Assembly: GCA_946965045.2 (NCBI GenBank)
Contig: OX337230.1
Span: 1,240,001 to 1,304,000 of the forward strand
DNA length: 64,000 nucleotides
Reading direction: 5' to 3'
DNA from: Epithemia pelagica
Lineage: Eukaryota; Protista; Bacillariophyta
Shown: one piece after another, positions 10,811-28,698 of the stretch
Numbering within the stretch: position 1 is the first letter of the stretch
Layout of the letters: the number at the start of each line of letters is the position of its first letter
Position numbers and translations under genes: made by a program
Notes under the pieces: model-generated
Database searches by the model: none
What the model saw: the letters and a program-made list of their open reading frames with translations, nothing else
What the model was told of the DNA's origin: nothing

Positions 10811-11345
10811 ATGATGTCTCGTTCATTGTTCAAGGTGCTCCCCAAAGTGCCCCCGGGAGGAGCGACGACGATTGCTCATCGTCGTTGTGTTGGCCAAAGC
10901 CGTTGGAAATCCACAGCGTTCGGCAAGAACGAAATGGACGAAATTTCGCCACGAGACGAAATCAACAAGCTCTCCACGAAGATGGACACTCTGGCGAGTC
11001 TCCATGTTCGTGCTGAGATTCTTGATTTCGTCTCGCAATATCAACAACGAAATTTCGTCCTTTTCCTTCTTGCCGACCTGCACAAAGATGGACAAGGAGA
11101 CGAGCAAGAGAGTGATCGAGGTAGTGATCGGGTTAGGGGGACTCATGCTTTCCCTCTATGGCGCTGCCATCATCAATCTTCAAGCGCATTCAAGTACCGT
11201 CACTGATAGATTCAATGGCGTCGCGGATAGATTCAATTCCGTCGGTGATAAATTCGACGGCGTTTCGCATCGTTTTGATGCGCAAGATGCCAGAATCGAT
11301 GCCCAACAAGTAAAGATCGAATTTCCCAACAAGAATGGCCGCTAG
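10811..11345 (+). pseudogene. Small mitochondria-targeted coiled-coil/TM family, copy 1 (frameshifted by internal inverted duplication)
   Basis: MMSRSLFKVLPKVPPGGATTIAHRRCVGQSRWKSTAFGK... is nearly identical to the copies at 28235, 31554 and 34898. The TM helix and C-terminal heptads (VIGLGGLMLSLYGAAII...DRFNGVADRFNSVGDKFDGVS) lie in a different frame after the inversion. Confidence 0.8.
10920..11076. repeat. Imperfect foldback inverted repeat (arms 10920-10990 and 10997-11076, 6-nt loop)
   Basis: The right arm is the reverse complement of the family segment GKKEKDEISLLILRDEIKNLSTNME. The left arm is the same segment in sense with a 9-nt deletion and several substitutions. Loop ctggcg. Confidence 0.85.
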
Positions 11346-11589
11346 TAGTTTGTCCTTTGTGCATGTCGGGGCGTCGTGTATGCGATAACTATTTCATAGA
11401 TAATGAGTTTAGAAAATCATCATTGCCTTTTCGAGTCGAAACACTACTTTGGTTTTGGTACAAACGCCTCCGTGGGAGCACGGGGATTTCCTTCGCATTC
11501 ATCAGTTTTGGCTGGGATACGGCGGCTCTTGGGAGAGATACGCGGGATCACGTAAGAGTCTCGATTCACACCTCCCTCCATTCACAGAG

Positions 11590-11690
11590 CAGACGGATTC
11601 GAACGGTGGCAGACGGATTCGAACGGTGGGGAAAATGATGGTGTCCCCTTCAAGTTTACATTGCCTGGCATGAGTGCTTACAAAACGACC
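11590..11690 (+). repeat. Junction with 20-bp tandem duplication followed by a ~75-bp copy of the 3' coding end of the plastid gene at 27473-27545
   Basis: cagacggattcgaacggtgg occurs twice (11590-11629). The following aaaatgatggtgtccccttcaagtttacattgcctggcatgagtgcttacaaaacgacc matches aaaatgctggtgtcccttacaagtttaccgtgccgggcatgagtgcttacaaaacgacg. Confidence 0.8.
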
Positions 11691-12045
11691 CTGGGGTCTG
11701 GGAGGGCCCTCCCAGTGCATGGTGATGATAATAACAAAACCATCAACCACGCATCCTAGCTATGTCATCTACACACTCCGAAGCTCAACGTCCGAAAGTA
11801 AAGAGACGCGTAACGAAAGAAACATTCCCGCCTTCATGTGCTACTGCTATGAGGAGCATCGCTTGGAGTAGCATCGCTTGGACAAGGAGTCATTCTATTA
11901 GGTAAAAGCTCACAATATAAGAAAGCTGTCCGTATTGTCTCCAGCCTACTAGTACAACGCACAGCCAACTTGTTGCAAAGAGCTTGATCACCTCGGTTGC
12001 CTCAAGTTGCCTCCTTATCCGAAGTTATCGTGAATTTAGTATACA

Positions 12046-13571
12046 TTGAGTCGTGCGATCTGGAAACGCACTTCGCTTGCAATGGCGGACTCGAGCTTGA
12101 CGTTCCATTTGATCTACAACGACGGATCCAGCGGCAATTCGAAAGAGTTGCTCTGGGAATTTTACTCCCTCGCCCTTGCTCCGTTTGCTTTCGGTGCTCC
12201 TGCCGAGCAAGTCCAACTTTTTCTGGACAAAAGGCTCCTCAATTTCTCGGACAATGTCCTTGACAGCGGCGTTCGAACTGTGGGGAGTAGCAGCATCGAA
12301 ACCGTACCATATTTCCCGAAATCTTACCATCACTATTTCAGAACGGTTTATCGTGCCGCAAGGATCATGGTGGATGCAAAGAGTCTTCCCTCCTGTTCAT
12401 TTAGAGTATTATCGGGCCGTGGCTTTAGCGGCTTCGCCGGCGGTCATGTTCAGTTTGGAACACGTATTTTCCATTTTGCGGATTTTGGATCATCAGCAGT
12501 ATCCCATTTAACAATTCTCGATTGATGCAATTCCGCACATGCGCTTGCTTCCTTCACGGGGAATTTCCCACTAGAGAATCCGCGACGGTTCAACAACAAG
12601 TACAGGGCAGAACATGTCTTTGTCAAGGACCCAAATTTTCCCGTCGCCTGCGATTCGAACCCACACGTTTGCGGCTTTAGGATCGGGGTCGCCGGACAAC
12701 ATCTCAAGGAACGTTTTATCTTGAACGATGACGTGCCAGGCATGTCTCTTCCATTTGGGGACTCCGTCACGTCCAGTGTAATTGCTGCGGTTGGTGAATA
12801 TTTACAACAACCGGGTGACCGTTGTCGCTCATTGGACGATTTATTCGTCGCCAAGTACAGTATCCTCAAAACGGTTTATCTCGCGCCGGATCACAAACTC
12901 AAACCATTCTGTAATCTCCAAAAGCTTCAGGAGCTTGTTGATGAACAAAAGATCCAGATCAACATGGCGGTTTTCGATTGTGAAATGTTCCACAAAACGA
13001 ATGGTTCCTGACCTTTGAGTGTGCCGTGAACCTCTCTGATGACCAGGAAGGCATGGCCAAGGATATTGTTGATTTCCTTGTTTCATGGATTCTCTCCTGG
13101 CACAACAAGCACCCCAATTCTAACGTGGAGCCTGTGGAGGCGCAGGATGCCTGGACCAAGCTTGCCCGAATGATGGGCCCTCATCAGCGACTGCTGACTC
13201 ATGTCTACATTGAACAGAATGAAACAACCGGCCAAATATGTCTATCTACCGAAGATGAAGGCATTGAGATTGAATCATGGGCGTTGTCTTGCGAGTCACT
13301 GAGTGACTGCATCGGCCCAGTGAGTCGGAAGATTGAAACGGGCAGTTTTGAGCCATATTTGGAAGAAGATGGTGCTGACCACGAGGAGGAGGAGGAGGAC
13401 AAATGTCCTGTCAGTCAAAAGTCTGGTGTCTCAGGTGTTGTTCCTGCCCACTCCTCATTTCGGCCAAACGAAACAACAGCAACAACAACAGACGCAAGCT
13501 ATCCAAACGAGCATCATACCAGCGGCAACAGCACCCAAAGCAACAATCCACTCCTAGTTTCAGCCGAATGA
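12046..13571 (+). pseudogene. Decayed gene of unknown family
   Basis: ORFs 12046..12525 and 12721..13011 share a frame and read through a single TGA (12523-12525) with protein-like sequence. A further frameshifted piece lies at 13026..13571. Confidence 0.35.
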
Positions 13572-13718
13572 CAACAACAACCTACACCGCAACCCAAATG
13601 CAACCATCAAAAGCTGACAACAAGAGATTAGGATGGAGAAACGACAGACCCATGAACCAACCAACGCAGCACTCAACCTCTTTAACGAGCATCGACAAGC
13701 ACAACTGGCAACGACAAG

Positions 13719-27560: not shown

Positions 27561-27780
27561 CAAAATGAGGACATTTATTTGCGGACCAAGGCTCTTTCTG
27601 TTTCCCGCCCCTATTGTCTTGTATGTTGTATCGTGCACCGCTTTCCACGCTCCACGCCCATGGTCCGCGCGCGCCCAAGAACATGATACAATACTGTGGT
27701 AGGAGTTTCCGTTGCAACCTGTACTCGTATTTAGTCATCAGGATCCTCTAACTCCCTCCAACCACAAAATAAGGCATCCA

Positions 27781-27972
27781 GATGAGAAGAAACGATCAAG
27801 CGCAATGTCCTCCAATCTGGAAAAGGCACTTCGTGTGAGGTTTGACAGCAACATTGACTTTGTGGCGAACGAGAAGAGTTCTGAGCGTCGTTTTGAGCAA
27901 CAAAGACTTCAGAAAGAATGTGTCTCGAACGAGGAGTCTTCACTGGAAAATCTGTTGCTTCTTTTGCGTTTT
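27781..27972 (+). repeat. Truncated copy of exon 1 of the gene at 38484 (direct repeat of about 38460..38652)
   Basis: About 190 bp of near-identity; both encode MSSNLEKxLxVRFDSNIDFVANEKSxERRFE...NEESSLENLxLLLRF. This copy diverges just before the splice donor seen at 38656. Confidence 0.85.
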
Positions 27973-28234
27973 ACGTGCTTTGAAAAAATTTTGAGTTTTG
28001 AACGTGCAACTACACAACTCAGCGCTCTTTTCTGGTTTGGCCTCAGGCAGCCGTTGCCACATGCCACAGCCAACCAGAGAGAGAGAGTCTTAAAAGCGCT
28101 AAGGCTTACCAAGAGCAGGCAATTTTGTGTCAAACGATTGTGGAGTCGGACTGCTGACACAAATTTGTGAGCCCAAGCTTATGAAACCGCCTGCGACTTG
28201 CGAATGCCTATCATCTTCATTCCTTTCTTCTATA

Positions 28235-28654
28235 ATGTCTCGTTCATTGTTCAAGGTGCTCCCCAAAGTTCCGCCGGGAGGAGCGACGACGATTGCTCAT
28301 CGTCGTTGTGTTGGCCAAAGCCGGTGGAAATCCACCGCGTTCGGCAAGAACGAAAAGGACGATATGTCCTTTTCGACATTGCGAGACGAAATCAAGAATC
28401 TCAGCACGAAGATGGACACTCTGGCGAGCAAGATTGTGATCGGGATAGTGGTCGGGATGGGGGGACTAATGCTCTCTCTATATGGCGCTGCCGTCACCAT
28501 CCTACAAGCGCATTCCAGTACCGTGGCTGGACGCTTCGATGGCGTCTCTGATAAACTCGACGGCGTTTCACATGGTTTTGATGCGCAGGATGGCAAAATC
28601 GATGCCCAACAAGTGAAGATTGACTTTTCAAACAAGAAAGACCGCATTTGGTAG
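28235..28654 (+). CDS. Small mitochondria-targeted coiled-coil/TM family, copy 3 (intact, 139 aa)
   Basis: R/K/S/T-rich, acid-free N-terminal ~35 aa, heptads, TM IVIGIVVGMGGLMLSLYGAAVTIL, then C-terminal heptads RFDGVSDKLDGVSHGFDAQDGKIDAQ. Confidence 0.7.
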   Translation: MSRSLFKVLPKVPPGGATTIAHRRCVGQSRWKSTAFGKNEKDDMSFSTLRDEIKNLSTKMDTLASKIVIGIVVGMGGLMLSLYGAAVTILQAHSSTVAGRFDGVSDKLDGVSHGFDAQDGKIDAQQVKIDFSNKKDRIW

Positions 28655-28698
28655 TTTGTGCTTCTTGTTTGAAAAGTCAATCTTCACTTGTTGGGCAT
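28602..28698. repeat. Perfect 37-bp inverted repeat (23-nt loop) spanning the stop codon of family copy 3
   Basis: 28602-28638 atgcccaacaagtgaagattgacttttcaaacaagaa equals the reverse complement of 28662-28698. The right arm is absent from the equivalent position of the other copies. Confidence 0.95.

Follow-up and report, generated by a model that had tools for sequence, protein, structure and literature searches.

The genes considered here encode small membrane proteins, and within the window (the whole stretch of 64 kb of DNA that was analysed) they occur in four distinct versions, three of which carry a hairpin formed by an inverted copy of their own sequence. This raises the question whether the hairpins are products of mutation in an unstable gene cluster or hairpin alleles that are retained as a source of small RNAs repressing the intact paralogues, both of which were put forward in an earlier interpretation of the letters alone (hereafter the sequence-only reading). 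Its count of three out of four versions is correct for the window, where the two hairpin-free copies, 4a (31554–32024) and 4b (34898–35368), both intact, of 156 codons and on the forward strand, are identical to each other. Genome-wide there are about 18 family matches, more than the window alone shows.

The gene family

Searching Pfam with the family proteins gave no match above the cut-off, and an Rfam scan of positions 10000–39000 revealed no family. An atlas feature search gave a best score of 0.77, which is uninformative, and a word-based protein search returned the window's own proteins only. When a profile of the family was searched against 1.8 billion representatives the matches were copies from the same genome (C5 and two more distant paralogues) and one short protein from a Logan contig. 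The same search produced many prokaryotic matches (DUF7310/XhlA-like) to the C-terminal 7-residue coiled-coil repeat, which were taken to reflect repeat composition, not homology. In the structure model the N-terminus is disordered and a single long helix spans residues 40–155 (mean pLDDT 68), so that there is no fold on which a search would be worthwhile. In the conserved 3' flank, covariation was unsupported among three distinct sequences, with one compensatory pair.

Hairpins and inverted segments

Copy 1 (10814–11345, forward strand) is divided into an N-terminal part, reaching to 10995, and a C-terminal part that runs from 11088 to the stop codon at 11343–11345. The two parts are in different frames because an inverted insert of 81 bp (10996–11076, forward strand) lies between them, and the frameshifting internal hairpin described at 10920–11076 in the sequence-only reading could thereby be confirmed together with its coordinates. 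The insert is the reverse complement of the family sequence for a GKKEKDEISLLILRDEIKNLSTNMET-like stretch and, according to the alignment, has no equivalent at this point in copies 2, 3 and 4. Its partner, the forward arm (10920–10991, forward strand), lacks a 9-bp segment still present in the inverted arm. Two pairs of arms can be distinguished, an outer pair (10920–10948/11048–11076; 29 nt, 93%) and an inner pair (10952–10991/10996–11035; 40 nt, 85%) enclosing a loop of 4 nt, both belonging to the single 81-bp insert with an asymmetry of 12 nt.

The frameshifted copy 1 is most likely a pseudogene. Its C-terminal half still has an open reading frame with a dN/dS of ~0.5–0.6, as in the intact copies, so copy 1 has perhaps not been dead for long. 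The intact C-terminal frame is also what would be expected if the insert were removed as an intron and the full protein still made; with splice sites at GT (11006) and AG (11086–11087), 82 nt would be excised and the frame restored, and the inverted arm supplies a pyrimidine tract before the AG. However, the frame is restored by 17 of the 48 GT-AG pairs around the insert, which equals the one-in-three rate given by chance, and intron rescue of copy 1, being very unlikely, was rejected on these grounds.

Copy 2 (13779–14016, reverse strand) consists of the N-terminal half only and ends where the transmembrane segment would begin. Its forward arm (13779–13833) faces an inverted arm of 55 nt (13713–13767, reverse strand) across a loop of 11 nt; the core of the arms (13719–13767/13779–13827) is 49 nt long with 94% complementarity and can be extended to the 55 nt at 91%. 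The homology to the family ends at the inverted arm, with unrelated sequence beyond it, and the transmembrane and C-terminal half is therefore missing, in agreement with the truncating 49-bp hairpin at 13719–13827 that had been proposed. Also this copy, being truncated, is most likely a pseudogene.

Upstream of copy 2 a segment of 15 nt (14096–14110, reverse strand) is inverted as compared with its homologue in copies 3, 4 and C5. In gene orientation it is the exact reverse complement of 28165–28179 in copy 3, which adjoins the 12-bp palindrome of that copy, as the sequence-only reading had noticed when listing it as a fourth micro-inversion. Alone the 15-mer shows no significant fold (z = -1.0), and comparison with its homologues suggests that it extends, on a micro-scale, the 12-bp palindrome of the family.

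Copy 3 (28235–28654, forward strand) has an intact frame of 139 codons and belongs to the first unit of a 3.3-kb tandem array. Its hairpin (28602–28698, forward strand) is formed by two arms of 37 nt (28602–28638/28662–28698) with 100% complementarity and a loop of 23 nt, and the stop codon (28652–28654) is situated inside the loop, so that the description of a perfect 37-bp hairpin across the stop holds in every detail. Compared with copies 1, 4 and C5 the derived insertion is ~28 nt (roughly 28663–28690). In these three copies the upstream ATGCCCAACAAG has an imperfect complement, CTTTGTGCAT, and the 28 extra nt in copy 3 turn this quasi-palindrome into a perfect one of 37 bp. The copy 3 hairpin is young and the reading frame has been kept.

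Each insert is thus located at its own site and consists of reverse-complemented neighbouring coding sequence that has no counterpart in the other paralogues, which argues for three separate events, as had been claimed; the derived state is in each case polarised by paralogues only, not by outgroup species.

Support from sequence reads

The assembly is built from long-read contigs, and chimeric fold-back reads or polishing errors could in principle have created the hairpins. A check with short reads was directed at the copy 3 hairpin alone, using three runs from two samples. In run X3 a contig of 83 nt covers 28609–28691 with zero differences, and neighbouring contigs in X1, X2 and X3 end at the edges of the copy 3 arms, as is expected of a k=31 graph at an inverted repeat of 37 bp. 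The insert-free form of copy 3 appeared in the short-read contigs of none of the runs. With short-read contigs from two samples containing it, the hairpin is no artefact of the assembly, and for copy 3 the spanning contigs contradict the absence from reads that had been named as a possible refutation. A second public record containing copies 1 and 3 (ctg1352l, ERZ21939226), whose gene table gives a 145-aa product at the position of copy 2, shows 100% identity over copy 1, but probably represents the same assembly and therefore provides no independent support. However, in copies 1 and 2 the two arms differ from each other (8/69 and 5/55) and include an indel, which a fold-back made during assembly would not yield, and every insert is found at a different place. 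An artefact of assembly or sequencing is accordingly regarded as extremely improbable.

Folding and frequency of the hairpins

When folded as RNA, the hairpins of copies 1, 2 and 3 reach -86.5, -88.2 and -63.5 kcal/mol, with z-scores of -12.1, -13.3 and -12.6 calculated from 200 shuffles, none of which (0/200) folds as well as the hairpins. At the equivalent site the hairpin-free copy 4 has a z-score of -0.7.

An inverted-repeat scan of the 64-kb window (arms of at least 25 nt, at least 80% match, loop of at most 150) identified the three family loci, copies 1, 2 and 3, and nothing else, the only other inverted pair being 24 nt long with a match of 75%. The impression that comparable hairpins are missing from the other genes of the window was hence correct. 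As background, 3 weaker or unrelated hairpin loci were found in 200 kb of other chromosomes, and the same scan revealed no hairpins in ~71 kb more of the genome. The Poisson probability of at least three hairpins in 4.6 kb is 2.4e-5 on 259 kb and ~1e-5 on 330 kb, for an enrichment that was noticed post hoc and a background of ~330 kb out of a genome of 60.5 Mb. In the comparison with background frequency, which had been named as a test, the density in the family is far above that of the ~330 kb sampled.

Palindromes of 12 bp are found at about the chance rate everywhere, one per 3–4 kb, and do therefore not explain the hotspot; an excess of short palindromes in the family was rejected as its cause.

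Recombination within the cluster

Comparison of units revealed a three-unit tandem array (28114–38138, forward strand, ~3.3 kb per unit) in which the left side of unit 2 is identical to unit 3 and its right side to unit 1. Judged by this pattern unit 2 arose by recombination between units 3 and 1, as expected from unequal crossover. Between copy 3 and copy 4 there is a divergent patch (28382–28700, forward strand) with 46–88% identity in 50-nt windows and a dS of 0.34, while its flanks (28235–28380 and 28701 onward) are 98–100% identical. The right edge of the patch lies 2 nt past the copy 3 hairpin, and its left edge corresponds to the sites of the hairpins in copies 1 and 2. Copies 1 and 2 form a convergent pair, about 2.2 kb apart. 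By these patterns of identity the cluster is recombination-prone, and copies 3 and 4 form a mosaic within it.

Origin of the inverted segments

Short-range template-switch mutations have been described by the four-point model of Loytynoja & Goldman (PMC5453318, PMC7954356), and the conversion of a quasi-palindrome into a perfect stem is a signature of such mutations (PMC5453318, PMC8794818, PMC10710096) that is shared by fold-back synthesis at breaks (PMC11724301). In all three hairpins the reverse complement is located at short range on the same molecule, with loops of 4–23 nt. A quasi-palindrome is present at the switch point of copy 3 (CTTTGTGCAT facing ATGCCCAACAAG), where a single event accounts for all differences, and the inverted 15-mer has the 12-bp palindrome beside it; copy 2 needs an extra deletion or joining step. 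The three hairpins, and probably the 15-nt inversion, are likely to represent independent template-switch mutations, or products of fold-back synthesis during repair, in a cluster that undergoes recombination.

In the course of replication, or of synthesis at a break under repair, a growing 3' end would fold back and pair with complementary sequence close by, after which 28–81 nt would be copied in reverse. In copies 1 and 3 the synthesis would then return to its own template, and in copy 2 the end would be joined to another end with loss of the 3' half. The events would pile up here because the sub-cluster consists of close paralogues that are prone to recombination, the context being a convergent pair (copies 1 and 2), an array that unequal crossing-over has remodelled, and mosaics from gene conversion. 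As far as can be read from the sequence, this context is the one cause that may be offered for the hotspot, and we infer both the molecular mechanism and the absence of a function. The template-switch hotspot suggested in the sequence-only reading is in this way supported by the derived inserts, the quasi-palindrome of copy 3, the density of hairpins and the rearrangements of the cluster.

For copy 1 the source of the inverted segment is less straightforward. The insert agrees with its own forward arm in just 62/81 positions with 9 gap columns, as compared with 70/80 for copy 2 and 72/81 for copy 3, and shares perfect runs of 36–37 nt with copy 2 and of 33 nt with copy 3. The differences from the forward arm are codon-level changes of the paralogue type, e.g. 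TCC versus AGC for serine, together with an indel of 9 nt. The inverted arm does not reproduce the forward arm in its present form, and a simple intra-strand fold-back is therefore not the full explanation there. Copying from an oppositely oriented family member, by switching between paralogues or ectopic conversion, would fit these similarities as well as the conversion mosaics and the convergent arrangement of copies 1 and 2. However, no present copy is the exact donor, and it explains the data equally well that the insert may keep the ancestral copy 1 sequence while the forward arm was changed later. Furthermore, in copy 3 (100%) and copy 2 (91–94%) the inverted arms are closest to the sequence beside them. 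An origin from other paralogues is considered unlikely, and template switching at short range is the interpretation retained below.

A possible role in silencing

If the hairpins were hairpin-RNA or miRNA-like regulators, their transcripts would be diced and repress the family in cis or trans, and the alleles would be kept by selection in a suppressor-like arrangement. The very stable folds of all three hairpins are consistent with such a role, and the copy 3 stem (37 bp with a loop of 23 nt) has a geometry favoured in miRNA precursors (PMC10710096). The genome also contains RNAi genes, namely an Argonaute (a Piwi-domain protein, 99 bits), a Dicer-like reading frame of 1455 aa with two RNase III domains and several RdRPs. 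The inverted arm of copy 1 contains perfect antisense matches to copy 3 (33 nt) and to copy 2 (37 nt), and hpRNA suppressors born from paralogues of their targets are known in Drosophila (PMC10292708, PMC10317233). RNA contigs specific to copy 3, which lie on its coding region, have a depth of ~2 as compared with ~92–140 for those of copy 4 type or shared, contig depth being a poor measure of expression.

On the other hand, the single RNA run has no contig over 28616–29120 and hence none on the copy 3 hairpin, and arms of 37–81 bp are far shorter than those of known hpRNAs. The mismatches between the older arms, those of copies 1 (8) and 2 (5), are all non-wobble in the sense transcripts (13/13), so that pairing has not been maintained. 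Copy 4, which is abundant, intact and duplicated, is matched at no more than 19/21 bases by any arm, and the copy 3 arm is perfect to itself only. None of the six more distant paralogues that were read contains a hairpin. Silencing by these hairpins, the second possibility of the sequence-only reading, gains no positive support and is for these reasons considered improbable. It is correspondingly doubtful that switching has repeatedly bred hairpin or miRNA-like precursors of which at least one is diced to dose or silence the family; the candidates, judged by pairing, may be the perfect 37-bp stem of copy 3 and the copy 1 arm that is antisense to copy 3.

Comparison with known systems

The cluster offers a clean natural example of short-range template switching, with three events in close paralogues, each polarised by the others, where one event gave a perfect stem with miRNA-precursor geometry and two knocked out gene copies. 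It illustrates how this class of mutation shapes and inactivates young gene copies in a diatom-type genome and points to a local hotspot tied to the breakpoints of conversion and crossover. Should small RNAs be present on the arms it would mean the birth of regulators from target genes outside animals and plants, i.e. protist small-RNA genes born from their own targets; without them the cluster documents well a process that is already known.

The hpRNA loci of Drosophila (PMC10292708, PMC10317233) resemble the present case in being inverted duplications within a young, rapidly evolving multigene family, with arms antisense to paralogues and RNAi machinery in the genome. Here, however, the arms are several-fold shorter, have decayed in two of three cases and leave the main intact copy unmatched, and while the Drosophila suppressors derive from selfish paralogues the present family is not known as selfish or toxic. 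Fold-back insertions and inversions in yeast (PMC11724301, PMC7467729) share the short inverted duplications with small loops, and copy 2, where the inverted part is joined to unrelated sequence and the distal part lost, looks as after break repair. The yeast insertions are mostly 5–34 bp, as compared with 28–81 bp here, where the events are known from sequence alone.

The closest similarity is to reported template-switch mutations, which create perfect RNA hairpins and new miRNA precursors (PMC8794818, PMC10710096). As in the present cluster, a single event places the reverse complement of neighbouring sequence into a transcribed gene, a quasi-palindrome becomes a perfect stem of ~35 bp whose loop exceeds 10 nt, and the insert is missing from related sequences. 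The present case differs from these reports in that polarity is given by paralogues only, that two of the events destroy coding sequence and that one cluster of a diatom-like alga has accumulated three to four events in its close paralogues over a distance of 18 kb.

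The gene family and its flanks

The assembly (60.5 Mb, 23 contigs) is eukaryotic, and the other genes of the window are ordinary eukaryotic ones (RFC1, a UCH protease, PSP1 and a macro-domain protein). Five copies of the small-gene family are present; copy 1 (10751–11598, plus strand), copy 2 (14077–13713, minus strand), copy 3 (28114–28950, plus strand) and the identical copies 4a (31427–32294) and 4b (34771–35638), both on the plus strand. The proteins, about 140–160 residues long, are basic in their N-terminal region and have short coiled-coil repeats, a single transmembrane segment and 7-residue repeats at the C-terminal end, and structure modelling predicts a disordered N-terminus followed by a single long helix. 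Pfam, an Atlas search and a word-based protein search assigned no family. A profile search gave about 18 matches within the genome itself, including an intact, divergent copy on contig C5 (39% identity) and a second cluster near C3:3.90–3.96 Mb, and beyond this genome only one short contig protein and repeat-composition matches. The dN/dS of the C-terminal half is about 0.5–0.6 in every pair, copy 1 included, so the family is weakly constrained and copy 1 not obviously long dead.

The second cluster of this protein superfamily (G000:C3:3896621–3959871) is larger, and with scattered copies at C3:3630993, C3:4297569 and C5:269812 it shows 25–40% identity; in the superfamily copy P0005 (211 aa) the N-terminal half is tandemly duplicated. 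No hairpins were found in those copies outside the window that were read.

The family pattern is one of constant flanks and a variable core. Conservation at the DNA level covers the 5' leader, the first ~50 codons and a stretch of about 150–240 nt 3' of the stop (28150–28380 and 28701–28940 in copy 3, 10751–10990 and 11367–11598 in copy 1, and L007:830–1067 and 1501–1650 in another piece of the genome). Copies 3 and 4 share these flanks at 100% identity, and even the C5 paralogue keeps 78–79%, despite a dS >1 in its core. Several 1-nt indels in the 3' flank argue against coding there, and RNAalifold detected no covariation.

Foldback hairpins as derived insertions

A repeat finder identified six short-range inverted repeats of at least 24 nt in the whole window, five of which compose three hairpins, in copies 1, 2 and 3, the sixth being a weak pair (24 nt, 75%). 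A second inverted-repeat scan agreed, and RNA folding gave -86.5 kcal/mol (z = -12.1) for copy 1, -88.2 kcal/mol (z = -13.3) for copy 2 and -63.5 kcal/mol (z = -12.6) for copy 3, against -31.1 kcal/mol (z = -0.7) at the equivalent site of copy 4. The three hairpins described in the sequence-only reading, and the lack of comparable ones elsewhere in the window, are thereby confirmed.

Alignments show each hairpin to be its own derived insertion, and the three inserts match different parts of the gene, in line with the separate events proposed earlier. Copy 3 carries about 28 extra nt (roughly 28663–28690) absent in copies 1, 4 and C5, which at this site have CTTTGTGCAT, an imperfect complement of the upstream ATGCCCAACAAG, so that the insertion turned a quasi-palindrome into a perfect 37-bp stem. 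In copy 1 a reverse-complement insert of 81 bp (10996–11076) shifts the downstream reading frame, and in copy 2 unrelated sequence follows beyond the inverted arm (13767–13713), hence the transmembrane and C-terminal half is missing; the frameshift and truncation noted earlier are both found. The 15-nt micro-inversion at 14096–14110, also noticed before, is identical to the homologous copy-3 15-mer once reverse-complemented and adjoins the 12-bp palindrome of the family, and alone it gives no significant fold.

The possibility that the hairpins are artefacts was addressed by comparison with sequencing runs at copy 3, whose hairpin alone has perfect arms. In X3, which like X1 consists of genomic short-read contigs (two samples, one study), an 83-nt contig spans 28609–28691 with zero differences. 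Flanking contigs of X1, X2 and X3 end at 28631/28638 and resume at 28695/28701, the interruption to be expected of a k=31 graph where it meets a 37-bp inverted repeat, and no run compared contained a form of copy 3 without the insert. For copies 1 and 2 the arms are diverged (8/69 and 5/55 mismatches, with a further 12-nt asymmetry in copy 1), which argues against assembly fold-back since this would not yield divergence. A second public record carries copies 1 and 2 (100% identity in copy 1) but is probably the same assembly and hence no independent support.

Frequency against background

With minima of 25 nt for arm length and 80% for complementarity, and a loop limit of 150 nt, no hairpin was found in the 59 kb of non-family sequence in the window or in about 71 kb of further genome sequence, and 200 kb from ten chromosomes gave three loci, one made of a 10-bp tandem repeat and two intergenic with 30–31-nt arms. 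With three hairpins, the family sequence of about 4.6 kb shows an unusual density (Poisson P 2.4e-5, Fisher P 1e-4 on a 259 kb background; P about 1e-5 on 330 kb), the P values being post hoc and the background a small sample of the genome. The 12-bp palindromes occur at chance rate everywhere and so do not account for the excess, and since the C5 copy and five more distant paralogues are free of hairpins, it belongs to the sub-cluster in the window and not to the family as such.

The intergenic pair, the sole non-repeat hairpins of the 200-kb sample, flanks a 587-codon reading frame (L018:3158–3252 and L018:6009–6101, within G000:C4:300001–310000). At L016:7888–8136 (within G000:C3:300001–310000) two 10-bp tandem-repeat arrays (GATGTCGTTT) are inverted toward each other, about 150 nt apart.

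A recombining cluster

With about 2.2 kb between them, copies 1 and 2 are convergent. Copies 3, 4a and 4b each head one of three 3.3-kb tandem units. Unit 2 equals unit 3 in its left part and unit 1 in its right part, the product that would be expected from unequal crossover. Copies 3 and 4 are 98–100% identical at 28235–28380 and from 28701 to the unit end, including 240 nt of 3' flank at 100%, but only 46–88% identical at about 28382–28700 (dS 0.34 vs 0.0 in the N-terminal part), where they are as distant from each other as either is from copy 1. The right edge of this old divergent patch lies two bases beyond the copy-3 hairpin, and its left edge in the coiled-coil repeat region, which is also where the copy-1 and copy-2 hairpins sit. 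The foldbacks may be products of the very repair events that produced the mosaic, or else the insert acts as a heterology at which conversion tracts stop.

Each unit of the tandem array (28114–38138) also contains a minus-strand gene with a weak Rgp1 match, a single 659-codon frame in unit 3 (35904–37883), whereas units 1 and 2 have it split into two overlapping frames (403 + 354 codons). The 3' edge of copy 1, precisely at the end of family homology, carries two direct tandem copies of a 20-bp sequence (cagacggattcgaacggtgg, 11591–11630). Short direct repeats, all of 88–91% identity, flank the array (27779–27973 and 38458–38652) and tie the flank downstream of copy 1 to a stretch that lies upstream of copy 3 (11617–11689 and 27474–27544); they are further traces of segmental rearrangement in the cluster.

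Silencing or template switching

Two interpretations had been offered, a template-switch hotspot and hairpin small RNAs suppressing intact paralogues. The latter, a regulatory silencing system, draws on the stable folds, the precursor-like stem and loop geometry of copy 3, a copy-1 arm with a perfect 33-nt antisense match to copy 3, and a genome encoding a Piwi-domain gene, several RdRPs and a two-RNase-III reading frame. Yet in the sense strands of copies 1 and 2 none of the 13 mismatches between arms is a wobble; each of them abolishes its pair. Against the intact duplicated copy 4 no arm exceeds 19/21, and that of copy 3 is a perfect match to itself only. X4, identified as an RNA run by a GT..AG joint at 27208/27425, gave no more than a depth-2 contig for the coding sequence of copy 3 and none over 28616–29120. 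Known hpRNA loci (PMC10292708, PMC10317233) also have far longer arms, and this regulatory half of the interpretation is unsupported and considered improbable. Upstream of copy 3, an X4 contig skips 216 nt with GT..AG ends (27211–27426), which confirms an intron in that gene.

The mutational half is supported by the derived reverse-complement inserts, their density and the recombining cluster. The copy-1 insert resembles copy 2 (70/80, 36–37 contiguous identities) and copy 3 (72/81, 33 contiguous) more closely than it does its own forward arm, which it matches at 62/81 with a 9-nt gap and from which it differs by paralogue-type codon changes, e.g. TCC vs AGC for serine. Either another paralogue served as template, or the insert keeps copy 1's ancestral sequence and it was the forward arm that was altered later. 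Removal of the insert by splicing is conceivable, but GT-AG pairs that restore the frame are as frequent there as expected by chance.

Judging by their anatomy, the hairpins of copies 1, 2 and 3 probably arose by short-range template switching, which they match (PMC5453318, PMC7954356) and which is known to make perfect hairpins, even new miRNA precursors, in a single step (PMC8794818, PMC10710096). The anatomy also matches fold-back synthesis at breaks (PMC11724301, PMC7467729), a version that fits copy 2 best because its distal half is lost. The hairpins in the window are a fresh instance of an already known kind of mutation.
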